Shown one piece after another: positions 542-12,500 of a DNA stretch of 64,000 nucleotides. The translations under genes and the position numbers were made by a program. Origin of the DNA: Hemiscyllium ocellatum (taxonomy: Eukaryota); assembly GCF_020745735.1 (NCBI RefSeq), contig NC_083407.1:70733857-70797856 (forward strand), in the 5' to 3' direction. The number at the start of each line of letters is the position of its first letter. The first letter of the stretch is position 1. Below the pieces are notes generated by a model, which did no database searches, was not told the DNA's origin, and saw nothing but the letters and a program-made list of their open reading frames with translations.

Positions 542-3500
542 CTGGAAAATAAATGTTATTTTACCTTAATTGAAAATCCTAATTCATAAATATCTAATTA
601 CAACATATTTTAATTTTTTAAAAAGTTCATCAGTAAAGAATGGTGAATCTTACCTTGTATTGTAAGGGTCGCAAATGTGGATGCAGTTCCATATTGGTTG
701 AATATTACACATGCATATACTCCTTCATGTTCTTTGCAAGTGCACCCAATACTCATTGTAGATCTGTTTTCTGTGGAGTGAATATTATAGTCCCTATTTC
801 GAGAAATTGGGCATTCACCCTTATACCAAACTACAGTAGGTTGTGGGTGCCCATAAAACTGGCATTCAAGCTCACATGATTCTCCTTGCTTAATTTCAGA
901 AGATGCAATATGATGGAAAAATGCAGGTGGGCAATGGTTGACTGCAGAAGTCTCTTGTTTTAGAGGTCCTTCTGTCACTACAAATTCAGATTGGCTGCTT
1001 GGTACTTCTGTTGATGTCTCTTCCATGAATGAACTGATGAAACCTGATGTTTTGTTATCCTCTGTTGAGCAAGGCATTTTTCCTGTTTGGATTTTACTTT
1101 TGACTTTCCATTTTTGTTGTGATTCTTTCTGACTAATTTCAGATGTGCTAACCATTGCTGTTTCTCCATCTGTTGATTGATCAGTTGTTCCATGGCCATG
1201 TGCTTGGTTTTCTATCAGAAAGTCTTTGTGCATTCTGGTAACACTGTCAAAAGCTGTCTCATGGCCTTCCCTAAATTCTGTTTTGTCAGGTGATCCTATT
1301 TTGCCAATTGGAGATGGCTTTTTCAATGCACTAACATAGGTTAAAGTTTCCATTTCCTCTGATAAAGGAGAAGTTTTTATCATCCAGGGTGGACTCACAA
1401 TCTTTGCCTCATATTGTGGCTCTTTCTGTTTGATTTTAGCTACACCTATCATTTCAATGCGATTTTCTGCTGATTTGGATTGCTCATGTACATCATGACC
1501 TTCTTCAGGCTTCCCTGATTGCACATCCTCTTGTACATGGTCAAAACCTGCAATCTGTTGGTCAAAAGCTGTTTCATGGTCTTCCATAAGTTCAAATCCA
1601 TATCCAGGTTCTTTTGCATCAATCGCTGTTTTTTTTATCGATGAACTGAAAGAGGTTGGCTCAAGTTTGCTATCTGGCAAAGAAGGATGGAGTATTTGAA
1701 TAGTGTTTCTTGCCATACCTGCAGGTTGTAACTCTTTATGGGAGACTTTAGAAAAGATGGTTGTCTCTATTTGTTTTACCACTGGTTTTGACCTGTTGGA
1801 TGCAGGATGGGCATCTTTAGATATTTCTGCTACAAAATCTCTGTCAGGTACAGTAAAGACATCAGCAGATATTTCTGTTATAAAATCTGTGATAGGTATT
1901 CCATGGACATCGTCAGGTCTTTCTACGACAAAATCTCTGTCAGCTACAGGATGGGCATCTGCAGATATTTCTGTTACAAAATCTCTGTCAGGTATAGTAT
2001 GGACATCTTTACATATTTCTGTTAAAAAATCTCTATTGGGTACGATAGGGGCATCTTTAGTTATTTCTGTTACAACATCTCTGTCAGACACAGAATAGAC
2101 ACCTTCAGATATTTCTGTTATGACATTTCTGTCAGGTACGATGTGGACATCTTTAGATATTTCTGTTACAACATCTCTGACAGGTACAGAATGGACATCT
2201 TTAGATACTTCTGTTACAACATCTCTGTCGCGTGCAGAATAGACATCTTTAGATATTTCTGTTACAACATCTGTGTCGTGTACAGAATGGACATCTTTAG
2301 ATATTTCTGTTACAACATCTCTGTCAGGTACGAAATGGATATCTTTAGATATTTCTGTTACAACATCTGTGTCGCATACAGAATGGACATCAGCAGATAT
2401 TTCTGTTACAACATCTCTGTCGGGTACGATATGGACATCTTTAGATATTTCTGTTACAACATCTCTGTCAGGTATGAAATGAACATCTTTAGATATTTCT
2501 GTTACAACATCTCTGTCAGGTACGAAATGGATATCTTTAGATATTTCTGTTACAACATCTGTGTCGCATACAGAATGGACATCTTTTGATATTTCTGTCA
2601 CAACATCTCTGTCAGGTACGAAATGGACATCAGCAGATATTTCTGTTACAACATCTCTGTTGGGTACGAAATGAACATCTTTAGATATTTCTGTTACAAC
2701 ATCTCTGTCGGGTACGAAATGAACATCTTTAGGTATTTCTGTTACAACATCTCTGTCGGGTACGAAATGGACATCTTTAGATATATCTGTTACAACATCT
2801 CTGTCGCGTACTGAATAGACATCTTTAGATATTTCTGTTACAAAATCTGTGTCGCATACAAAATGGACATCAGCAGATATTTCTGTTACATCTCTGTTGG
2901 GTACGATATGGACATCTTTTGATATTTCTGTTACAACATCTCTGTCGGGTACGAAATGGACATCTTTAGATATTTCTGTTACAACATCTCTGTCGGGTAC
3001 GAAATGGACATCTTTTGATATTTCTGTTGCAACATCTCTGTCGGGTACGAAATGAACATCTTTAGATATTTCTGTTACAACATCTCTGTCGGGTACGAAA
3101 TGGATATCTTTAGATATATCTGTTACAACATCTCTGTCGCGTACTGAATAGACATCTTTAGATATTTCTGTTACAAAATCTGTGTCGCATACAAAATGGA
3201 CATCAGCAGATATTTCTGTTACATCTCTGTTGGGTACGAAATGGACATCTTTAGATATTTCTGTTACAACATCTGTGTCGCGTACAAAATGGACATCTTT
3301 AGATATTTCTGTTACAACATCTCTGTCGGGTACGAAATGGACATCTTTTGATATTTCTGTTGCAACATCTCTGTCGGGTACGAAATGGACATCTTTAGAT
3401 ATATCTGTTACAACATCTCTGTCGCGTACTGAATAGACATCTTTAGATATTTCTGTTACAAAATCTGTGTCGCATACAAAATGGACATCAGCAGATATTT

Positions 3501-6500
3501 CTGTTACATCTCTGTTGGGTACGAAATGGACATCTTTAGATATTTCTGTTACAATATCTCTGTCGGGTACGAAATGGACATCTTTAGGTATTTCTGGTAC
3601 AACATCTCTGTTGGCTATGAAATGGACATCTTTTGATATTTCTGTTATAACATCTCTGTCGGGTACGAAATGGACATCTTTAGATATTTCTGTTACAACA
3701 TCAGTGTCGGGTACGAAATGGACATCTTTAGATATTTCTGTTACAATATCTGTGTCGCGTACAAAATGGTCATCTTTAGATATTTCTGTTACAACATCTC
3801 TGTTGGGTACAGATTGGACACGTTGAGGTATTTCTGTTACAACATCTCTGTCAGCTACAAGATGGGCATCTTTAGATATTTCTGCCAGAAAATCTTTGTT
3901 GAGTGCAGTATGGGTATCTGTAGATATTTCTGTCACAAAATCCCTAGTAGCTATTCCATGGACTCCTTCAGAACTTTCTGTTACAAAATCTCTGTTGGCT
4001 GCAGGATGGGCAGCTGGACATATCTCTTTTACAAACTCCCTCATAGTGCTATCAAAATCTTCAACAAATATTTCTGGAGGTTTCGTGCCAATCTCCTCAA
4101 CATTGGATTTATAAAGAAATTCTTTTGCTTCTACTATTGTTTCACTTGCTGTTGAACTGACAAATGTTGCATTTTCTGTTTTGTTGAATTTACAAGAGGT
4201 TAGTGCTGAAGTGAAGTCTTTAACCTTCACTCCATACTGTTCTTTTTGGCTGAGTTTTGATGCACTAATCACCTCTGTGTGCTTTACTGCTGATCTGAAC
4301 TGATCAGGTATTTGGTTTGCATGGATATTTTCAGATGTTACTGCTGGAGTGTCCTTCTCTGCATGAAAGATACTTCCAAGATTTTTATCAGAAATTGACT
4401 CAGATTCTTCTTGAACATCAAATTCATTTGGAAAGTCTTTTGTTTCCATTGGGATTTGTTTTACCACTGTTCTGGCAAAAGTTGCTGTCCCTCTAGTTTT
4501 TGCTGTCAAGGGAGAATGTCTTAAAGCATGAATGGAAAATGTAAACGGTGTTTCATCTTGTGTTTCATTTTGCCTGTTTTGGGGTGTTCTAATTACCTCT
4601 GCCTGGCTAACTGCTGGTGCAGATTGAGCAGATATTCTATGACAATTCTCAGGTTTCTGAGTTGGTAAATCTCTCTGTACATGAATGAATCTCTCAGGTT
4701 GTTGTCCCAGAGGAGTCTCATGGTCTACCTTACTAGATTTATGTGCAGTATCTTTTACTTCTTTTGGTAGTTCTCTCATAAAAGAACTGACAAAACCTGA
4801 GGTTTCTTGCTCTCGTAAAATAGAGAATGTCATCAGTGGAGTAGAATCTTTAATTTGATCTTCATATTGTATGGCTTCATGATTGACTTTAGAGATGCTT
4901 GGCACATTTTCCTTCGATACTGGTTTTGTTTGATCAGTGATTAAATGGTCAAATCCAGACACCGGTTTTACTGAGACATTCCTAGCCCACTGGTCATGAA
5001 TTGCATTTGGATCTTCTTTGTCTTCAACTTGACACGTTTTGTTCTTTCCTATCATGTTAGCTTCTAATGATGTTCTGAAAATGGTTGAGATTTCTTCTTC
5101 CTCTAAGGAAGAAGGTTTCGGTTTTTGTGTACGTTCTCTCATTATCTCAGCTTTTTCATCAAAACTGGATACATTGACTTCAGTTGTTTTGGAACCATTA
5201 AACATTGACTGGCTATTTTCAATTTCCTTTGCTAGTGAGTTCTGCGTACTTATTAAACTTTCAGACTGCTTATCAGAAAGTAAGCCATGGTCTCCCTTCA
5301 AGTCGGACTTACTTGGATAGTCTTTTAATTCCACTGGAATTTGCTTTATCAGTGTTCTGGTGAATGTTGGGAAATCTGTCTTCCACAACATTTCCATATA
5401 CTCACTGTCTTCAGGCTGTGGTATTTCTTTAATTAACTTTGTTTCTTCAGCTGCTGGTGTGGAAGGTTTCAGAAAAATTCCCTCCTCTTTAGTTAGTAAA
5501 TACCTTTGCATATCATTAGTGGATCCAAACCATTGGTCAGAAAGTGCCTGTGGTTCTTCACAACATTCACTTTCTAGTTCTTCTCTTGTATCATATTCCT
5601 TTTGAAAATACCATTCATCAGTTTTCTGCTCTTCCAATCTATGCTGACTTTTCTGTGAGCATTCTGTCTCTTGAATCAAATTATCTTTCAGAACTTGCTC
5701 TCTGAGTGAATGTGTGTCTTTCATTCTGCAAGACTGCTTAATAATATTTTCTTCAGGAGCTCTCTGTGGTCCTACTTCATGTGAAGGAAGACCTAATATC
5801 CACTCCATTCGATATTTAAATTCAGGACATTCTCTCTGCAAATATTTACCAGATGATAATTCCTGTTCTTGCACAAAATTTGACTTATAACTATCAAAAT
5901 CCATGCGATCAAGGTCCCCCACACTTCTGCTGCGCCCTCTGTCCAAATCAGCATAATTGTATTTCAGATTGCCTTCAGTTGATGCTGTCTCCAAGTCAAA
6001 TGATGCTTCAGAAAATGCAAGAGAAAACCTTTTTCTCCTTTTAGCTTCTCGTAAAAGCTGTAATTTAATTTTAGTGTCTTCATCAATCAAGCTATCCATG
6101 CTGCGAATCCTCCTAAAAAACCTAGATGACTGTATTTCTGCAGAATCATCATTAAACAAATCATGTTTTATTGGCATTCTTTCAAAATACATTGTACGCA
6201 TCAGTTTGCTTTTAGAATTTGACTGCTTATGCAAAATTCCTGGAATCTGATATTTCTTATCAAAAGGAGATCCAACATGTCGGAGATCAACTCTAAGTCT
6301 TGCATTCCTTTTTTTAACTAAAGAGTCTATGCTCTTGTGAGCTATTTCTGATCTTTTCACAAAACTGATATAGTTTGCATTTTGCTCTTCTTTAAGGGCA
6401 ACAAGTAAAGATGCAGTTGCTTCTGCTGAACCCTCAGAATTTATTGCAAATATTCTGTAACTCCCTGAATCTTTCTCTTCTACATTATTGATTTCCAAAC

Positions 6501-9500
6501 TTGAGTTGTGAATATGCATCATGCTTTCTATTTTAATAATCCTTCTTGAATCTTTATGTATAGGTCTGTTGTTATGAAACCATGCAACTGTTGGTGCTGG
6601 ACTAGCAACCAGTTTGCATTTAAAAATAGCTTGCTCTCCTTCCATTACAGATTTGAATTTTAGCTTTTCAGTAAAAGATGGCCTGAAATTTTCAGACCAG
6701 GAACTTATAGAAGATGTTCTGCTTGCACAACGATCAGCAGAAACAAGTTCCTGATCTAAATAATCTTCAGCATCAGAAAAAGCTTCCCGCATGTTTTCTC
6801 TGTTCTCCAAATGTTCTCTCCCGTCACCAAAAAATAATTCTGCAAAAAAAGCATGAAGTTTCAGTTCAAACATTTTAAGAATTAAGTTTAGTACAAATCT
6901 GTAATACAGTGAAATGATGAATGTAATACATAAGCTTTTCCACAAATACTATAAAAATTCACTCACCATATTTGTTCGAATAAACGCAAGACCATTTTCT
7001 GTTTTAATGATTCTGAGCAGGAAAATCGCTCGTTCTTTGTTCCTTCTTCAGACTGTCGTAATTTCTTCTCAAAAATCATTAGAGCGTATGTTTTCAAAAA
7101 AACATAAAGTGATCTCATGACAGAATTTTGTTTTTGTTTTGTAATGTAAAATCTGTCCCTATAATGATTGGGGGATAGTTAGGTTATTACAAGATCTTAC
7201 CTGACTTGCAGACAGCAGAATAAACGCCCTTTCTGATCTTGCAGCATAGATAAATTGTACAGCCAGTTTGGTAAACAAAGTTTTAAAATTTTAATAAATA
7301 GAAGGAAATAAATTTATCTGTAACAGTAATCCTTCTAATTTGCATGAGAAGGCGTTTATTCGAACTAATATAGTTGCTAGATTCACAATGTTACGCAAAA
7401 CTGCCAGCGTACATGAACACATACTGCTATCTGCAAGCCAGTGTAAATACATGAAGATAGACTGATGTCATGTAAATGGAAAAACTAGACACAAAAATGA
7501 AAAATACCCTAACCAAGTTGCTTTAGCAAAATGTACCCTCCAGTCCTCCTAAATACCAGATGCAATTATTATTGTAAAACTTAATGGAAACTCAGAAATA
7601 AATGAGACAAACAAAAGTACTGATTCAAGTAATCACAATATAAACACATACTTCTGGCATTGAATCATTAACTGACAAATAATTGACATTTGAATTAAAT
7701 GCCTCATTATATACCTTATAATAGAACCCGACATGCATCTCAATATATTCCTGCTGCAGCATATTAATTATGATAATAAGCAATTCGAAATTGAAATTTA
7801 GCTGAATTATGAGGAACTAATAATAAAGTAAAGTTGCCTGTAATATAAATATTGAGGTTAAAGGATTATTTTATTTACATCAATATGAAAATGATGTTAA
7901 CAAACCAGACTTGTAAACAAATCAGATAGAAACAGATAACATGTGATTTTGATATTTTGCAATGCAACACAAGTTATTATGATGGCAAAATATCAATGCA
8001 TACAGGGCAGTAAACATTAGAACCTAAAATTGTTATAAAATTAAAGAAATTTTTATCAAATAATGATAAAAGTATTACCTCTCACTTCCATTTCTATTTG
8101 CTGTTCAATTTTGTCTTGAATCTTTTCCTTGACAGCTGCATGAAAATGAATAATATTAAATATCATAGCAAGTATGTAACACCCCTTTTCCATTCCTACA
8201 TTAAAAAAAATGCAAAACAAGAAAATAAAACTAAGAATACATGGACTATGCAAAGACATCCGAAACATACATGCAAAATTGTTACAGTATAGTTGCTAAT
8301 TAGGGTTTCCAGAAGGCTTTACCAGGCAACTGGTTGATTCACAAAGCGAATTCAGACAATTCAGGATTTTACAAAAAAAAGTTCATTCTCCATTTTGTTC
8401 TGTACCAAAACATCAAACATGCCTCAACATGCCTATTCTGATTTCAGGAAAAAAAGAAATGCAATAATCCACAGGTCAAAAGATGACTTTCTGCAAAGAA
8501 TCTTTCTATGAGATGTGCTGAGATGCATGATAGAGTCACATTGGGAAGGACCAAAGCATGCAATTGCCAACCTGTCACTCTAAGTAGTGTGTTGCACGCT
8601 GTTTCTCCAGCAGAGTTAACCGCTTTGCATGAATAAGTGCCACTGTGGCTTTGGCTGACTTTCTGTAACTTTAAACTGCATAGCAACCCATCATGTTTAA
8701 TGGAACACAATGAAGACTCTTCAACTATGCGTTGGTTGTACAGCCAAAGTACACAAGGTGATGGTACACCTTTTACAAGGCAAAACAGTAAAACATCTTC
8801 TCCATTTTGTGCAATGACTTCTGGTGGCAACTTTTCTAAGAACATCGGTGCTATGGCTCCAGTGTCTATCAGTTCATCGAAGGGCACTACGTCAGGATAA
8901 TAGTCGTGACTTCTTGGCTTCTCTCTTCCAATTGGCCTTTTGGTTGAAGATGGTGGTGGGCTTGATGGCTTCTTTAATACTTCTGGTTTGCTATCAGATG
9001 TAATGTGTGGCCTTTGTTCAGTTTTAGTGCTATCTGAATTGCTATCAGTGGGAATTTTTGCACCTGTTTTGGGTTGTGATTCTTCAGCTATGCAAGAATA
9101 AAATCAGGATAAATGTTAACTGTCTTATCAATTTCAGCAAAGTAAATATTTGTACAATTTTATAACAGCAAGACTCAGTGTTTGCAATAATACATGCATA
9201 TTGGTGTGATGAAATGTCTAGTGTTAAGTTTTATATAAATCACTAACTAAACATTTTTAATTAAAATTAAAAGGTAAATTTAGAATTTTCTTAACACGAT
9301 ACTAGACTTATTTGGGAAATGAAACAATGAAGTGGATGGATCTGGATTTTGTTTGTAAATAAAATTATAAACAACCACCTTCAACTATTAGTACAGCAGT
9401 AGTCTTCATTTCACCACCTTCATTTCTTGCAGTACAGCTGTACTGTCCCTGATCTTCTAAGTGCACATTAAGGATTGTGAGTGACATGACATTTCCAATC

Positions 9501-12500
9501 TGAGAAATCTTCAGTCTTTCTGATTCTTCCAGTCTTTTGCTTCTGTGACTCCAAATTACCTCTGAGAAAGGTTCCCCACTAAAAGAACAGATGAATTGTG
9601 CCACCTGACCAGCTTTCACCCTCAGATCACTAAGTTCAAGCAGAATCATAGGCATCTCAAGGGCAGGTTTAGCTGCAGTAACAGTTATTTCAGCTTCACA
9701 TTTAACCTCACCATAAAGATTTATAGCTTTACATCTATAGGTCCCTGTGTCTTTTTCTTGAACTTCTTGTATAATTAATTCAGATGATGTCAAGACTTCA
9801 TCCTCTGTTATAGTGATAATTTTCAATCCCTTAACTTCCGTAAGTTCTTGATCTTTTCTGTACCATTTTATTTCTGCTCTTGGGAATGCCAGGATTTGAC
9901 ATTTTAGAGATGCAGTTTCACCTAACAAAACTGTAACGCTATTCATATCTTGCAGGATTTTTGGTGAACTTTGGCAGCCACTTCTGACTGCTTCTGTCTT
10001 CGCAATTTTTTGGTGTTCTTCCCATCTTTCAGAAGAAACTGTTGTGCTCGATGAACTCATGGAAACACTTTCAAACATCTGAACATTGTAAGTATGTTCT
10101 TGCTGTGAACTGATTTCTTTTGCATAGTTCTTTGTATGCGTTATGGTCACAGGGGACTCCACATGCATTTCTGATACTTCAAAAGTCTTTGAAACGATGG
10201 ATTCCTCTACAGCTTTTCCAGAAGTTGTTATGCTCTGACTATCTATGCTTTGCACTTTGTAATCTGAGTAACAAAAGACAAAATATTAATCATGATATTA
10301 AATCATGACTGACAAAATAACAAAAGCAACAGCTCATGTTGTCCAAAGGGCAACCCAGCATGCTAGCCACATGCTCAAGAAGTGCAATTCACTTGATTGA
10401 GGAAAACTCCCATGTCCTTTTCCTCAATGTCATCTGCTACATTCTATTGGAGAAAACAGCATTCATGGAACAAAGATGAAGATTTAGTTCTTCTCTTGCA
10501 AATACTCAAGATGAAGATGAATGCATCTAAATATATGAAGATGAAAGGTTTTCCAAATAGTGTAAAAAGTGATCAGATTTTAGAAACATGAGGTGGTAGG
10601 AAGAATGAAACCAAAGCATAGTAGAAAAAAAGTCAGTGATAAAATATGCTCTCAAAAATAGCACAGAAAATCACATTTGTAGGATAAATTGTTTGAACTT
10701 CAATTACTGTACATTTAGTACCACTAGATTTTTCAGCAGCACCATTTATTTTGTTTGCATGTATATTGCCCGACATGAGCTGTACTTTGCTGAAATTGCT
10801 GAATAAGTTAACACTATCCTCATTTTATTCTTGCATCAAAGAAGGGTGGCATTGTTCTCAGAATTATCAAAATTAAGTACCAGGACTTTTCTAGGCTTCA
10901 TTAACTGTCCAATATGCAATCCTTAAGTTTCTGATTTGGGGACACCAGAAACTATTGCATAAAATTTGATTGCTGCCCCACACTTGCCTACTTAAAATGC
11001 TGTTAATAAAAGTAGGCAATTGTTTATGTTGCTCCTTCAGAAGAACCAAACGAGGACATACATAAGCTACTAAGTCATTGATGTAATCAATCTTTTTATA
11101 TCCTGGAAAGGAAATCAGGGTTTGAACTGTATGACTGGCATTATGAATGAAAAGCCAAAGCACAGACTTGTAACATTAAAAAAACAATATGTCTTTGTAT
11201 GATTGAATTACTTAGGTGCAACTGATAAAAACTTTCATCTTACTTTATAATTCTCTGGAAAAATCTAAAAATTGAAACCACTGCAAGAGAAGACCTAACC
11301 TTAATCAAAAAATCCAAACAAATGATTAAATTAAAAACTTTATTCCTTATTAAATTTACAGTTGTAACACGTTCTTTAAACAAAAGAGATTTATTTAATG
11401 ATAAAGGATGATCATGTTATGGTGGAATCCCACAGTGCACAGCAGATGGCCTCTGTTGTTTACTTCAGAGGTGGATGAGAGAACTGGCCATTAGATACTA
11501 TAGATGTGAAAAGAAATGTAGACTAGGTGAGTTGCTTGATGAGGTCTAAAGCTGATGAAAATGCTTCAACAAATGGGAGGTACAAAGGTAAGGTGGAATG
11601 GTGTTCAGCAGTACAAGCACAAAATGCACATGCTGTCCCGAGAAGTGAACACAGTTGCTGGCCGAATTGTGATGATGTTTAGAAAAGAATGATGCAGGCA
11701 ATGTCAAACAATGAGAACAACCACAGGCAGAAAAATGCTTCAAAGTTCATATCAGGAAAACAGAGATATAAAAATAATGAAAGATGTAGCAATGTAAAGC
11801 CAAAAATAATGATTAAATTAGTTTACCTTCCAGTTTTAAGTTTGCAGTACATGACACCTCTCCAGCAGAGTTGGATGCCACACATTTATAGATTCCTTCA
11901 TCCTCTGGGTAGACTTCAGCAATTTCCAGCTGATAAGTATCTTCAAACTGAACCATCTTGAAGAATCGTGATTGTTTGATCTCCTTCTGCTTACTGTACC
12001 ATGTAACCTTGAGATCTGAAGATATTTTTAAAATAAATGCATTTTCATCAAAACACATTGCCCCAAGTTGATCTTGGCAACAAATCCTAACTTTATGAAC
12101 TATGAGCCTAAATATGTCATAATTAAATTCACTATAATAGTACAGTATTTATAATTTGAAATATTGCAGCTGAAATATGAAAGAAGTAGGAGCATCCCAA
12201 AGATCTGTCGTGCATGTAAAGGAAGCAAGGGCAGAAAGTAGCATCCCATAAAAACAATGGGAATCTGAGCAGCAAAGAAAAATGTGGGGCATGAAGAAGC
12301 ACACTATAAAAAGAAATCTGCTGCTTAAATGTTAAATAACAGAAGAAAGAACATAAAATTGACATCATAGTCAGCACAGAATGGTATGCATTCGAGCCTT
12401 AGAATTACTGTTTGGTGTTTCCTGTGTTTTAGTTGTCTTAAACAATACAATTTAGGTTTTAAAAGAAGACAGATCAAATAGCCTTAATCAAGGATTTTTC

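Follow-up and report, generated by a model that had tools for sequence, protein, structure and literature searches.

Mutually exclusive RNA pairings around a stop-carrying exon of titin intron 47: a candidate splicing module conserved from lamprey to mammals

The titin locus and its intron 47

The subject of this report is a titin gene lying in a 64,000-nucleotide (nt) stretch of the Hemiscyllium ocellatum genome (RefSeq assembly GCF_020745735.1, contig NC_083407.1, positions 70,733,857 to 70,797,856; hereafter the window, whose own coordinates are used throughout), and in particular a set of mutually complementary intronic elements that surround a stop-carrying alternative exon and cover two 5′ splice-site sequences. 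The sense strand of titin is the minus strand of the window, and all features below are given on that strand, with the RNA running from higher to lower positions. The novex-3-like exon (610–6839) opens at an acceptor, uuuuuuugcag|A, with its junction at 6840/6839, and its frame stays open until the stop at 610; it is contained in a 2111-codon open reading frame (ORF; 610–6945), as seen in the ORF listing and its translation. Homologues of this exon, variously labelled titin-like, unc-89-like or obscurin, are found in sharks, rays, chimaera, frogs, lizard, birds, marsupial, teleosts and lamprey.

The last coding exon before novex-3, which is exon 47 by position, codes for an immunoglobulin (Ig) domain and occupies 8572–9087 (its upstream edge is approximate), with a two-Ig exon further upstream at about 9368–10200; no coding exon was found between 8572 and 6840. 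Exon 47 has an orthologue in the same final coding position in bird, lizard, frog, chimaera, rays, shark and lamprey, at a distance of 1.4–2.1 kb upstream of the donor of the alternative exon discussed below, exon 48′. Identity of the orthologues to 8572–9087 is 70–95% in cartilaginous fishes, 52–63% in bird, frog and lizard and 43% in lamprey. As the exon at 8572 is the final coding exon before novex-3 across species, the pairing elements and both donors lie inside intron 47. This corrects an earlier reading of the window made from its letters alone (hereafter the original prediction), which had placed them "just upstream" of novex-3 in an exon 47–48 setting. The pairing region was also considered as a coding exon in its own right, a candidate that was rejected: its indels between species are not multiples of three and the ORFs of the NCBI models in exon 48′ differ in frame from one species to another, and it is therefore not protein-coding.

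A docking element, two selectors and an outer helix

An inverted-repeat search of the minus strand recovered each pairing of the original prediction at the place foreseen for it: a docking element complementary to two selectors, each of which lies on a 5′ splice-site sequence, and an outer helix. In the RNA these elements follow one another, from 5′ to 3′, as H0 and O5 (the 5′ arms of the outer helix), the docking element D, selector 1 (S1) with O3 (the 3′ arm of the outer helix) and the first donor, the acceptors of exon 48′, and finally selector 2 (S2) with the second donor.

The docking element (7346–7374; ACUAUAUUAGUUCGAAUAAACGCCUUCUC) pairs through its 3′ part with S1 (7218–7233; GAAAGGGCGUUUAUUC), the 11-bp core GAAUAAACGCC/GGCGUUUAUUC joining 7361–7351 of D to 7228–7218 of S1 and being extendable to 16 nt at 88% complementarity. 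Through 7374–7352 it pairs with S2 (6965–6987; GCGUUUAUUCGAACAAAUAUGGU), which consists of the last 21 nt of exon 48′ and the GU of its donor; over these 23 nt (91% complementary), across a 364-nt loop, there are 21 Watson–Crick pairs, one U-G pair and one A-A mismatch, exactly the composition that had been claimed. The core common to both selectors is GCGUUUAUUC and the positions of D used by both are 7361–7352. Because D/S1 and D/S2 draw on the same 10–11 nt of D, they are mutually exclusive, as had also been proposed. The 5′ 13 nt of D are unpaired in the hairpin form, i.e., the fold that combines the outer helix with D/S1, and could act as a toehold. D itself is remote from the splice sites, at distances of 150 to 380 nt. 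Its core (7352–7361) contains, on the sense strand, a canonical AAUAAA hexamer, of which both selectors are the complement. Further copies of the selectors or the docking element were sought near exon 47, within novex-3 and downstream at all loci, and only scattered, non-conserved matches with one mismatch were found.

The outer helix is formed by O5 (7424–7441; CUGGCUUGCAGAUAGCAG) and O3 (7201–7218; CUGCUGUCUGCAAGUCAG), the latter contiguous with S1 and ending at position −1 of 5′ splice site 1. O5 (7441–7424) and O3 (7218–7201) make 16 Watson–Crick and two G-U pairs; the 17-bp helix first described is present within an inverted repeat of 7201–7221 with 7421–7441 that extends to the pair C7441-G7201. 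After a small internal loop, the RNAalifold consensus resumes the helix with four further pairs (7447–7444 with 7199–7196), in which +2 to +5 of 5′ splice site 1 are bound by the 5′ arm H0 (7444–7447; UUUA in the window and CUUA in most of the species). With the H0 pairs added to the outer helix, all of CAG|GUAAG at 7200 is base-paired. Thus 5′ splice site 1 (7195–7203; CAG|GUAAGA, junction 7201/7200) is a consensus donor lying wholly inside the helix of O and H0; no exon is known to end at 7201, and the site may be a decoy or a cryptic donor. H0 and O5 together resemble the 5′ end of U1 small nuclear RNA (CUUAC..CUGGC). The second 5′ splice site (6961–6969; AUG|GUGAGU, junction 6967/6966), the donor of exon 48′, has its positions −3 to +2 in the D/S2 helix, and its sequence AAAUAUGGUGAGU is invariant in all 12 species compared below. 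All three wobbles of the pairings are G-U on the sense strand, and CpGs are retained in each element (two in the docking site, one in S1 and two in S2), both in keeping with the original prediction.

Conservation from lamprey to mammals

Orthologues were located by a protein search with the novex-3 N-terminus, followed from there to annotated gene models and to the surrounding DNA of eleven species; together with the window, the alignment covers Stegostoma tigrinum, Mobula, Amblyraja, Callorhinchus, Scleropages, Chaetodon, Xenopus, Varanus, Melospiza, Trichosurus and Petromyzon. Over 7500–6830 the window is 93% identical to Stegostoma tigrinum, 79–81% to Mobula, Amblyraja and Callorhinchus, and 64–67% to Scleropages, Chaetodon, Xenopus, Varanus, Melospiza and Trichosurus (E 1e-34 to 1e-58), while Petromyzon aligns in the core blocks only. 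Conservation in orthologous introns had been set in advance as a test of the original prediction, and every pairing element is present and nearly invariant in all 11 other vertebrates, with flanks and spacers that vary freely and carry many indels.

This conservation is concentrated in the helices. Among the 521 alignment columns of the 11 gnathostomes, 144 are invariant, and 94 of these fall within the 111 helix columns. Five blocks of at least 9 nt are invariant in these species and all five are helix arms: CUUGCAGAU in O5, the 23-nt stretch UAUUAGUUCGAAUAAACGCCUUC in D, GGCGUUUAUUC in S1, UGCAAGUCAGGUAAG across O3 and donor 1, and UUGCGUUUAUUCGAACAAAUAUGGUGAGUG across S2 and donor 2. The 5′ splice site 1 is likewise invariant in gnathostomes and reads CAG|GCGAG in lamprey. 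An unbiased scan of all column pairs for complementarity, with pairing possible in at least 10 of the 11 gnathostomes, returned as its longest matches D/S2 (in two parts, of 14 and 8 nt), D/S1 (13 nt) and O5/O3 (12 nt); what remained was only four short, G-U-rich pairings of 7–8 nt near the exon 48′ donor. The pairing region proves to rank with the titin gene's most deeply conserved non-coding features. Between O5 and D, all gnathostomes also carry a semi-conserved block, UUGCAUAACAYUGU (7385–7405), for which no conserved pairing partner was found.

The few substitutions that have occurred are informative as to strand. In D/S2, 22 of the 23 positions are paired in 11 of the 12 species (21 in Amblyraja); pairing is disrupted only once, at the last pair of the helix in the skate. 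Positions 7374 and 7371 alternate between A and G opposite an invariant U, giving A-U or G-U on the sense strand, where the antisense would have C-A. Lamprey shows a compensatory double change, C7352 to U with G6987 to A, which turns C-G into U-A; its U7352 still wobbles with S1, and the otherwise constant A-A mismatch of D/S2 has become G-A. The D/S1 core is invariant in gnathostomes and has two wobbles and one mismatch in lamprey. In O5/O3 the three changes in the skate are all compatible with pairing, and in lamprey a U-G has become C-G, although there is also one G-G mismatch; the outer 12-bp core of this helix (7441–7430) is kept in all 12 species. In H0, a further lamprey double change at 7444/7199 converts A-U to G-C, by a joint change of U to C at donor +2 and of A to G opposite it. 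The tally comes to two compensatory events, both on the lamprey branch, and about six wobble-compatible transitions. A formal test of covariation needs far more events than such nearly unvarying elements supply. The substitutions are nonetheless suggestive of pairing in the sense RNA. A stronger argument than covariation is that nearly all of the ultraconserved sequence of this intron consists of arms complementary to one another.

Chance expectation and folding energies

Inverted repeats were counted in the 64-kb window and in 12 dinucleotide shuffles. With arms of 23 nt, at least 21 Watson–Crick pairs and a loop of up to 600 nt, there is one in the window, which is D/S2, and none in the 12 shuffles. 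The other pairings belong to commoner classes: 13 repeats with 17-nt arms and 15 Watson–Crick pairs against 4.6 in the shuffles, and 27 against 14 for 11 of 11. Taken alone, the outer helix and D/S1 are thus ordinary repeats, notable only through their contiguous 3′ arms and the shared docking core.

The 501-nt region is more stable than its shuffles on both strands (z −3.1 sense, z −4.2 antisense). The D/S2 duplex has a computed energy of −26 to −30 kcal/mol and D/S1 of −21 (−14.3 in lamprey). In 9 of the 12 species the nested fold of lowest energy is the hairpin form, composed of O5/O3, H0 and D/S1, which in two more comes within 1.5 kcal/mol of the minimum; in the nested ensemble, the probability that 5′ splice site 1 is unpaired is 0.01–0.28 in 11 species and 0.53 in Stegostoma. 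The combination of O5/O3 with D/S2 is estimated at 3–13 kcal/mol below the hairpin form in gnathostomes, before any penalty for the pseudoknot or the long loop. The energies of the two forms being near each other, they are plausibly balanced. A scan of 6700–7700 against Rfam gave only sub-threshold, snoRNA-like (small nucleolar RNA-like) noise (E of at least 0.45; 15–20 bits, against gathering scores of 35–55).

Exon 48′ and its in-frame stop

The exon ended by 5′ splice site 2 is the homologue of exon 48′, which was reported by Chen et al. (2018, Genes 9:86; PMC5852582) on the basis of reverse transcription polymerase chain reaction (RT-PCR) together with sequencing in eight vertebrates as an 85- or 100-bp exon with a 15-bp alternative segment, in a region found to be conserved by mVISTA. 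The same study described it as a minor product that shifts the frame of novex-3 and is independent of RBM20 (PMC5852582). In the window it spans 6967–7067, with two acceptors 15 nt apart (7069–7068 and 7054–7053) that yield 101 nt (7067–6967) or 86 nt (7052–6967) up to the donor AUG|GUGAGU at 6967/6966; the lengths are the same in Stegostoma and one nt shorter in Mobula and Callorhinchus. The donor at 6966 therefore belongs to exon 48′, inside intron 47.

Exon 47 ends in phase 1 with a final G, at the donor CAG|GUUGGCAAUUGCA, i.e., CAG|GUUGGC. When exon 48′ is entered at the proximal acceptor, this G meets UC UGA to give GUC UGA, an immediate in-frame stop; from the distal acceptor the reading is GAA GAA AUU ACG ACA GUC UGA. 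In the other species an in-frame stop likewise falls within the first 2–11 codons of exon 48′, save in Varanus, in which it comes at the novex-3 junction. Transcripts with a stop more than 50–55 nt upstream of an exon junction are, as a rule, subject to nonsense-mediated decay (NMD). The stop of exon 48′ is about 80 nt upstream of the 48′/48 junction, and NMD is therefore predicted under that rule.

NCBI gene models annotate an intron from the region of the exon 48′ donor to the novex-3 acceptor in Mobula, Callorhinchus, Amblyraja and Chaetodon, the Chaetodon model apparently using a donor 4 nt downstream of AUG|GUGAGU. Within the invariant AUGGUGAGUGAA (6956–6971), AUG|GUGAGU indeed overlaps another donor, AUGGUGA|GUGAAU, which is shifted by 4 nt. 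Splicing from the latter places the invariant AUG in the novex-3 reading frame (M-V-K-L-F-F...), and that the Chaetodon model uses this donor is judged from its first residues; a novex-3-only protein made from this internal start is conceivable. The Amblyraja model takes the AUG that closes exon 48′ as its start, probably because an extra A shifts its frame: relative to Logan contigs of a close relative, the early novex-3 of Amblyraja radiata (about 5150–5175 of its locus) has one extra A in a run of A, which may be an indel of the assembly or else a genuine difference. The Logan proteins from skate-like species were considered as transcripts and rejected, as they are genomic ORFs, and a search of contigs from close relatives with short protein queries gave only one 1.3-kb metagenome contig that begins inside S2.

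The donor of exon 47 is itself non-consensus, and together with the next 13 intronic nt (GUUGGCAAYUGCA; window 8559–8579) it is kept from lamprey to bird and lizard. So weak yet conserved a donor fits a regulated branch point. At the same donor, UGCAAUUGCA forms a 10-nt palindrome in the sharks and rays compared.

A candidate structural module and its alternatives

The locus holds pairings that exclude each other, conserved from lamprey to mammal, next to an exon with an in-frame stop, and the two folds have near-equal computed stabilities. We infer from this that the helices would form in vivo and would influence splice-site use, in the direction and by the strand-displacement path set out below. 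In general terms, intron 47 of the titin pre-mRNA probably contains a cis-acting RNA structural module around the stop-carrying exon 48′ that sets the exposure of 5′ splice sites and the inclusion of this exon. In its fuller form the proposal is more tentative, a serious possibility that stops short of being probable: a two-state RNA switch predating the lamprey–gnathostome split, in which a hairpin with a self-occluded donor would be invaded by S2 through the 13-nt toehold, so as to meter co-transcriptionally, by way of exon 48′, the unproductive transcripts of the novex-3 branch.

As transcription proceeds in the order O5, D, S1, O3 and then S2, the hairpin can form first. In this state, O5/O3 and H0 would bury 5′ splice site 1 (7200) and D would be paired with S1, leaving the exon 48′ donor (6966) exposed. 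Once S2 has been transcribed, its 3′ half would pair with the free 5′ half of D (13 nt), nucleating there, and S2 would go on to displace S1 from the shared GAAUAAACGC core, ending in a 23-bp helix that spans the exon 48′ donor from −21 to +2. On the model of the stem-occluded donors of MAPT exon 10 and SMN2 exon 7, the D/S2 helix would block the binding of U1, so that exon 48′ would more often be skipped. What share of the transcripts contains exon 48′ would then depend on how the two forms are balanced; those with the exon would carry the premature stop and be truncated or predicted NMD targets, the remainder becoming productive novex-3 (47–48) or full-length (47–49) mRNA. A switch that governs the choice between novex-3 and full-length titin, as first proposed, is not supported; the target directly implied by the architecture is the inclusion of the stop-carrying exon.

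Several observations weigh against this interpretation. The inner 6 bp of O5/O3, a third of the helix, are often broken in bony vertebrates, and the conserved helix is therefore only the outer 12 bp with H0. The two double changes, both from lamprey, are far below what R-scape needs. The antisense strand folds at least as well as the sense (z −4.2); since both fold well, thermodynamics alone cannot choose the strand, which is indicated rather by the substitution pattern. D/S2 can coexist with O5/O3 only as a pseudoknot, the cost of which lies outside the computed energies, and use of 5′ splice site 1 is undocumented. Finally, the invariance of the elements is stricter than pairing requires, which points to added or alternative constraints, e.g., protein binding, U1 binding or a function at the DNA level.

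That the hairpin form rules the nested ensemble, with a probability of about 1 in most species, weighs in the same direction and would be expected if there were one static structure and no switch. Either D/S2 would then repress the donor of the poison exon constitutively, or the hairpin would silence the strong cryptic donor at 7200, with the second complementarity a by-product of how the elements arose, e.g., by duplication of a selector. This is unlikely, though it deserves the most attention among the alternatives: exon 48′ was reported as a minor product (PMC5852582), and in lamprey D/S1 is much weaker (−14.3 kcal/mol, with its one mismatch and two wobbles) while D/S2 and O5/O3 are still strong. 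Against it, the S1 core is invariant in all 11 gnathostomes, although it is intronic and has no other known role. Furthermore, S1 is fused to O3, so that opening either of D/S1 and O5/O3 affects the other, and the two forms are close in computed energy. Somewhat less probable still is that the blocks are kept as single-stranded recognition sequences—two U1 sites and the motif GCGUUUAUUC in repeated copies, with its complement, bound by proteins or small nuclear ribonucleoproteins. Invariance so nearly total typifies sequence-specific recognition more than it does helices, which tolerate covariation, the more so over a lamprey–gnathostome divergence of, by our own estimate, roughly 500 million years, and both selectors adjoin consensus donors. 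Recognition of single strands nevertheless leaves unexplained why D, 150 to 380 nt from the splice sites, should have a 23-nt complement in S2 and one of 11–16 nt in S1, and O5 a complement of 12–18 nt in O3; all substitutions outside the helix ends are compatible with pairing or compensated, and the invariant blocks coincide exactly with the helix arms.

Many ultraconserved non-coding blocks are enhancers, and the retained CpGs, as well as the fact that NCBI novex-3-only genes begin in or beside the pairing region in many species, would suit an element acting as DNA, i.e., an enhancer, or a promoter inside the gene for transcripts of novex-3 alone, with factor sites in inverted repeat. We consider this improbable in view of the strand-asymmetric variation (G-U in the sense RNA as against C-A on the antisense), the consensus 5′ splice sites, the experimentally spliced exon (PMC5852582) and the 23-nt inverted repeats 364 nt apart, which are untypical of factor sites. 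The layout also resembles terminal inverted repeats, as would be left by a transposon or foldback element such as a miniature inverted-repeat transposable element (MITE), or by a functionless chance repeat. The core is, however, single-copy in the window, no target-site duplication was found at the helix ends, the shuffles gave no comparable repeat in 12 trials, and 11 other vertebrates, lamprey among them, have the elements at the orthologous place, by which a MITE or chance origin is refuted, in line with the original prediction. Of these readings, the RNA structural module around exon 48′ is thus the one preferred here.

Relation to known systems

In the stem-loop of MAPT exon 10 and the terminal stem-loop TSL2 of SMN2 exon 7, positions −3 to +2 or +6 of the donor are held in a helix that limits the access of U1. 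These are short, local hairpins with a single state, whereas titin has a long-range helix (with its 364-nt loop) that competes with a second one. A parallel in architecture is insect Dscam1, where exon 6 and related clusters (PMC4691838, PMC3535345) have, like titin, one docking element, selectors sharing a core and exclusive pairings conserved for hundreds of millions of years. In Dscam1, however, the selectors are upstream of each variant exon and pairing activates an exon within a mutually exclusive cluster; in titin there are two selectors only, they lie over 5′ splice sites, pairing should occlude rather than activate, and the target is a stop-carrying cassette instead of an array of coding alternatives. 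Among vertebrate genes, a parallel might be struck with ATE1 (PMC7797038), in which conserved boxes compete for a shared partner (R1 and R4 for R3), and with BRD2/BRD3 (PMC10789245), in which RNA structure gates a poison exon (BRD2 exon 3b). Those cases were proven by mutation, whereas the titin case is known from sequence alone; the conservation of its elements, on the other hand, reaches far deeper, and a consensus donor that occludes itself is among them. A premature-stop alternative exon within an ultraconserved non-coding block also recalls the poison exons of splicing factors (PMC13228269, PMC11357089), but titin is not a splicing factor, has no evident autoregulatory loop, its downstream exon is itself terminal, and its NMD is only predicted. 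Seen together with these systems, the titin case would belong to splicing control by competing RNA structures, and the competing-pairing interpretation is structurally well founded.

The original prediction had held that the system was without description, which stands for the RNA pairing but not for exon 48′ and the conserved region, both published (PMC5852582). That study treats the same locus, exon, 15-nt alternative acceptor segment, donor and conserved block; it differs in having conservation and RT-PCR only, and does not include the RNA pairing, the buried second donor, the stop at the start of the exon or the conservation in lamprey and cartilaginous fishes (PMC5852582). Full-text literature searches returned no paper that joins titin with docking/selector pairing or with long-range RNA structure, and TTN is absent from the supplementary text of a catalogue of human conserved complementary regions (PMC8052449), from which the full catalogue may differ. 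Thus what is new is the pairing architecture only, which appears to be undescribed.

Significance for titin

Three-way complementarity that is almost letter-perfect from lamprey to marsupial offers a mutable target of about 25 nt per element, and pairing would account for the ultraconserved non-coding block of intron 47. Titin is the main gene of dilated cardiomyopathy. The novex-3 branch, which has been linked to fetal cardiomyocyte proliferation (PMC6098106, PMC11178842), is independent of RBM20 (Chen et al. 2018, PMC5852582). The elements described here flag intronic positions at which human variants could alter the inclusion of exon 48′ outside the annotated exons. If the proposed two-state switch is true, this would be the first mechanism of the docking/selector type described in a vertebrate sarcomeric gene, and it would provide a handle on the dosage of novex-3.

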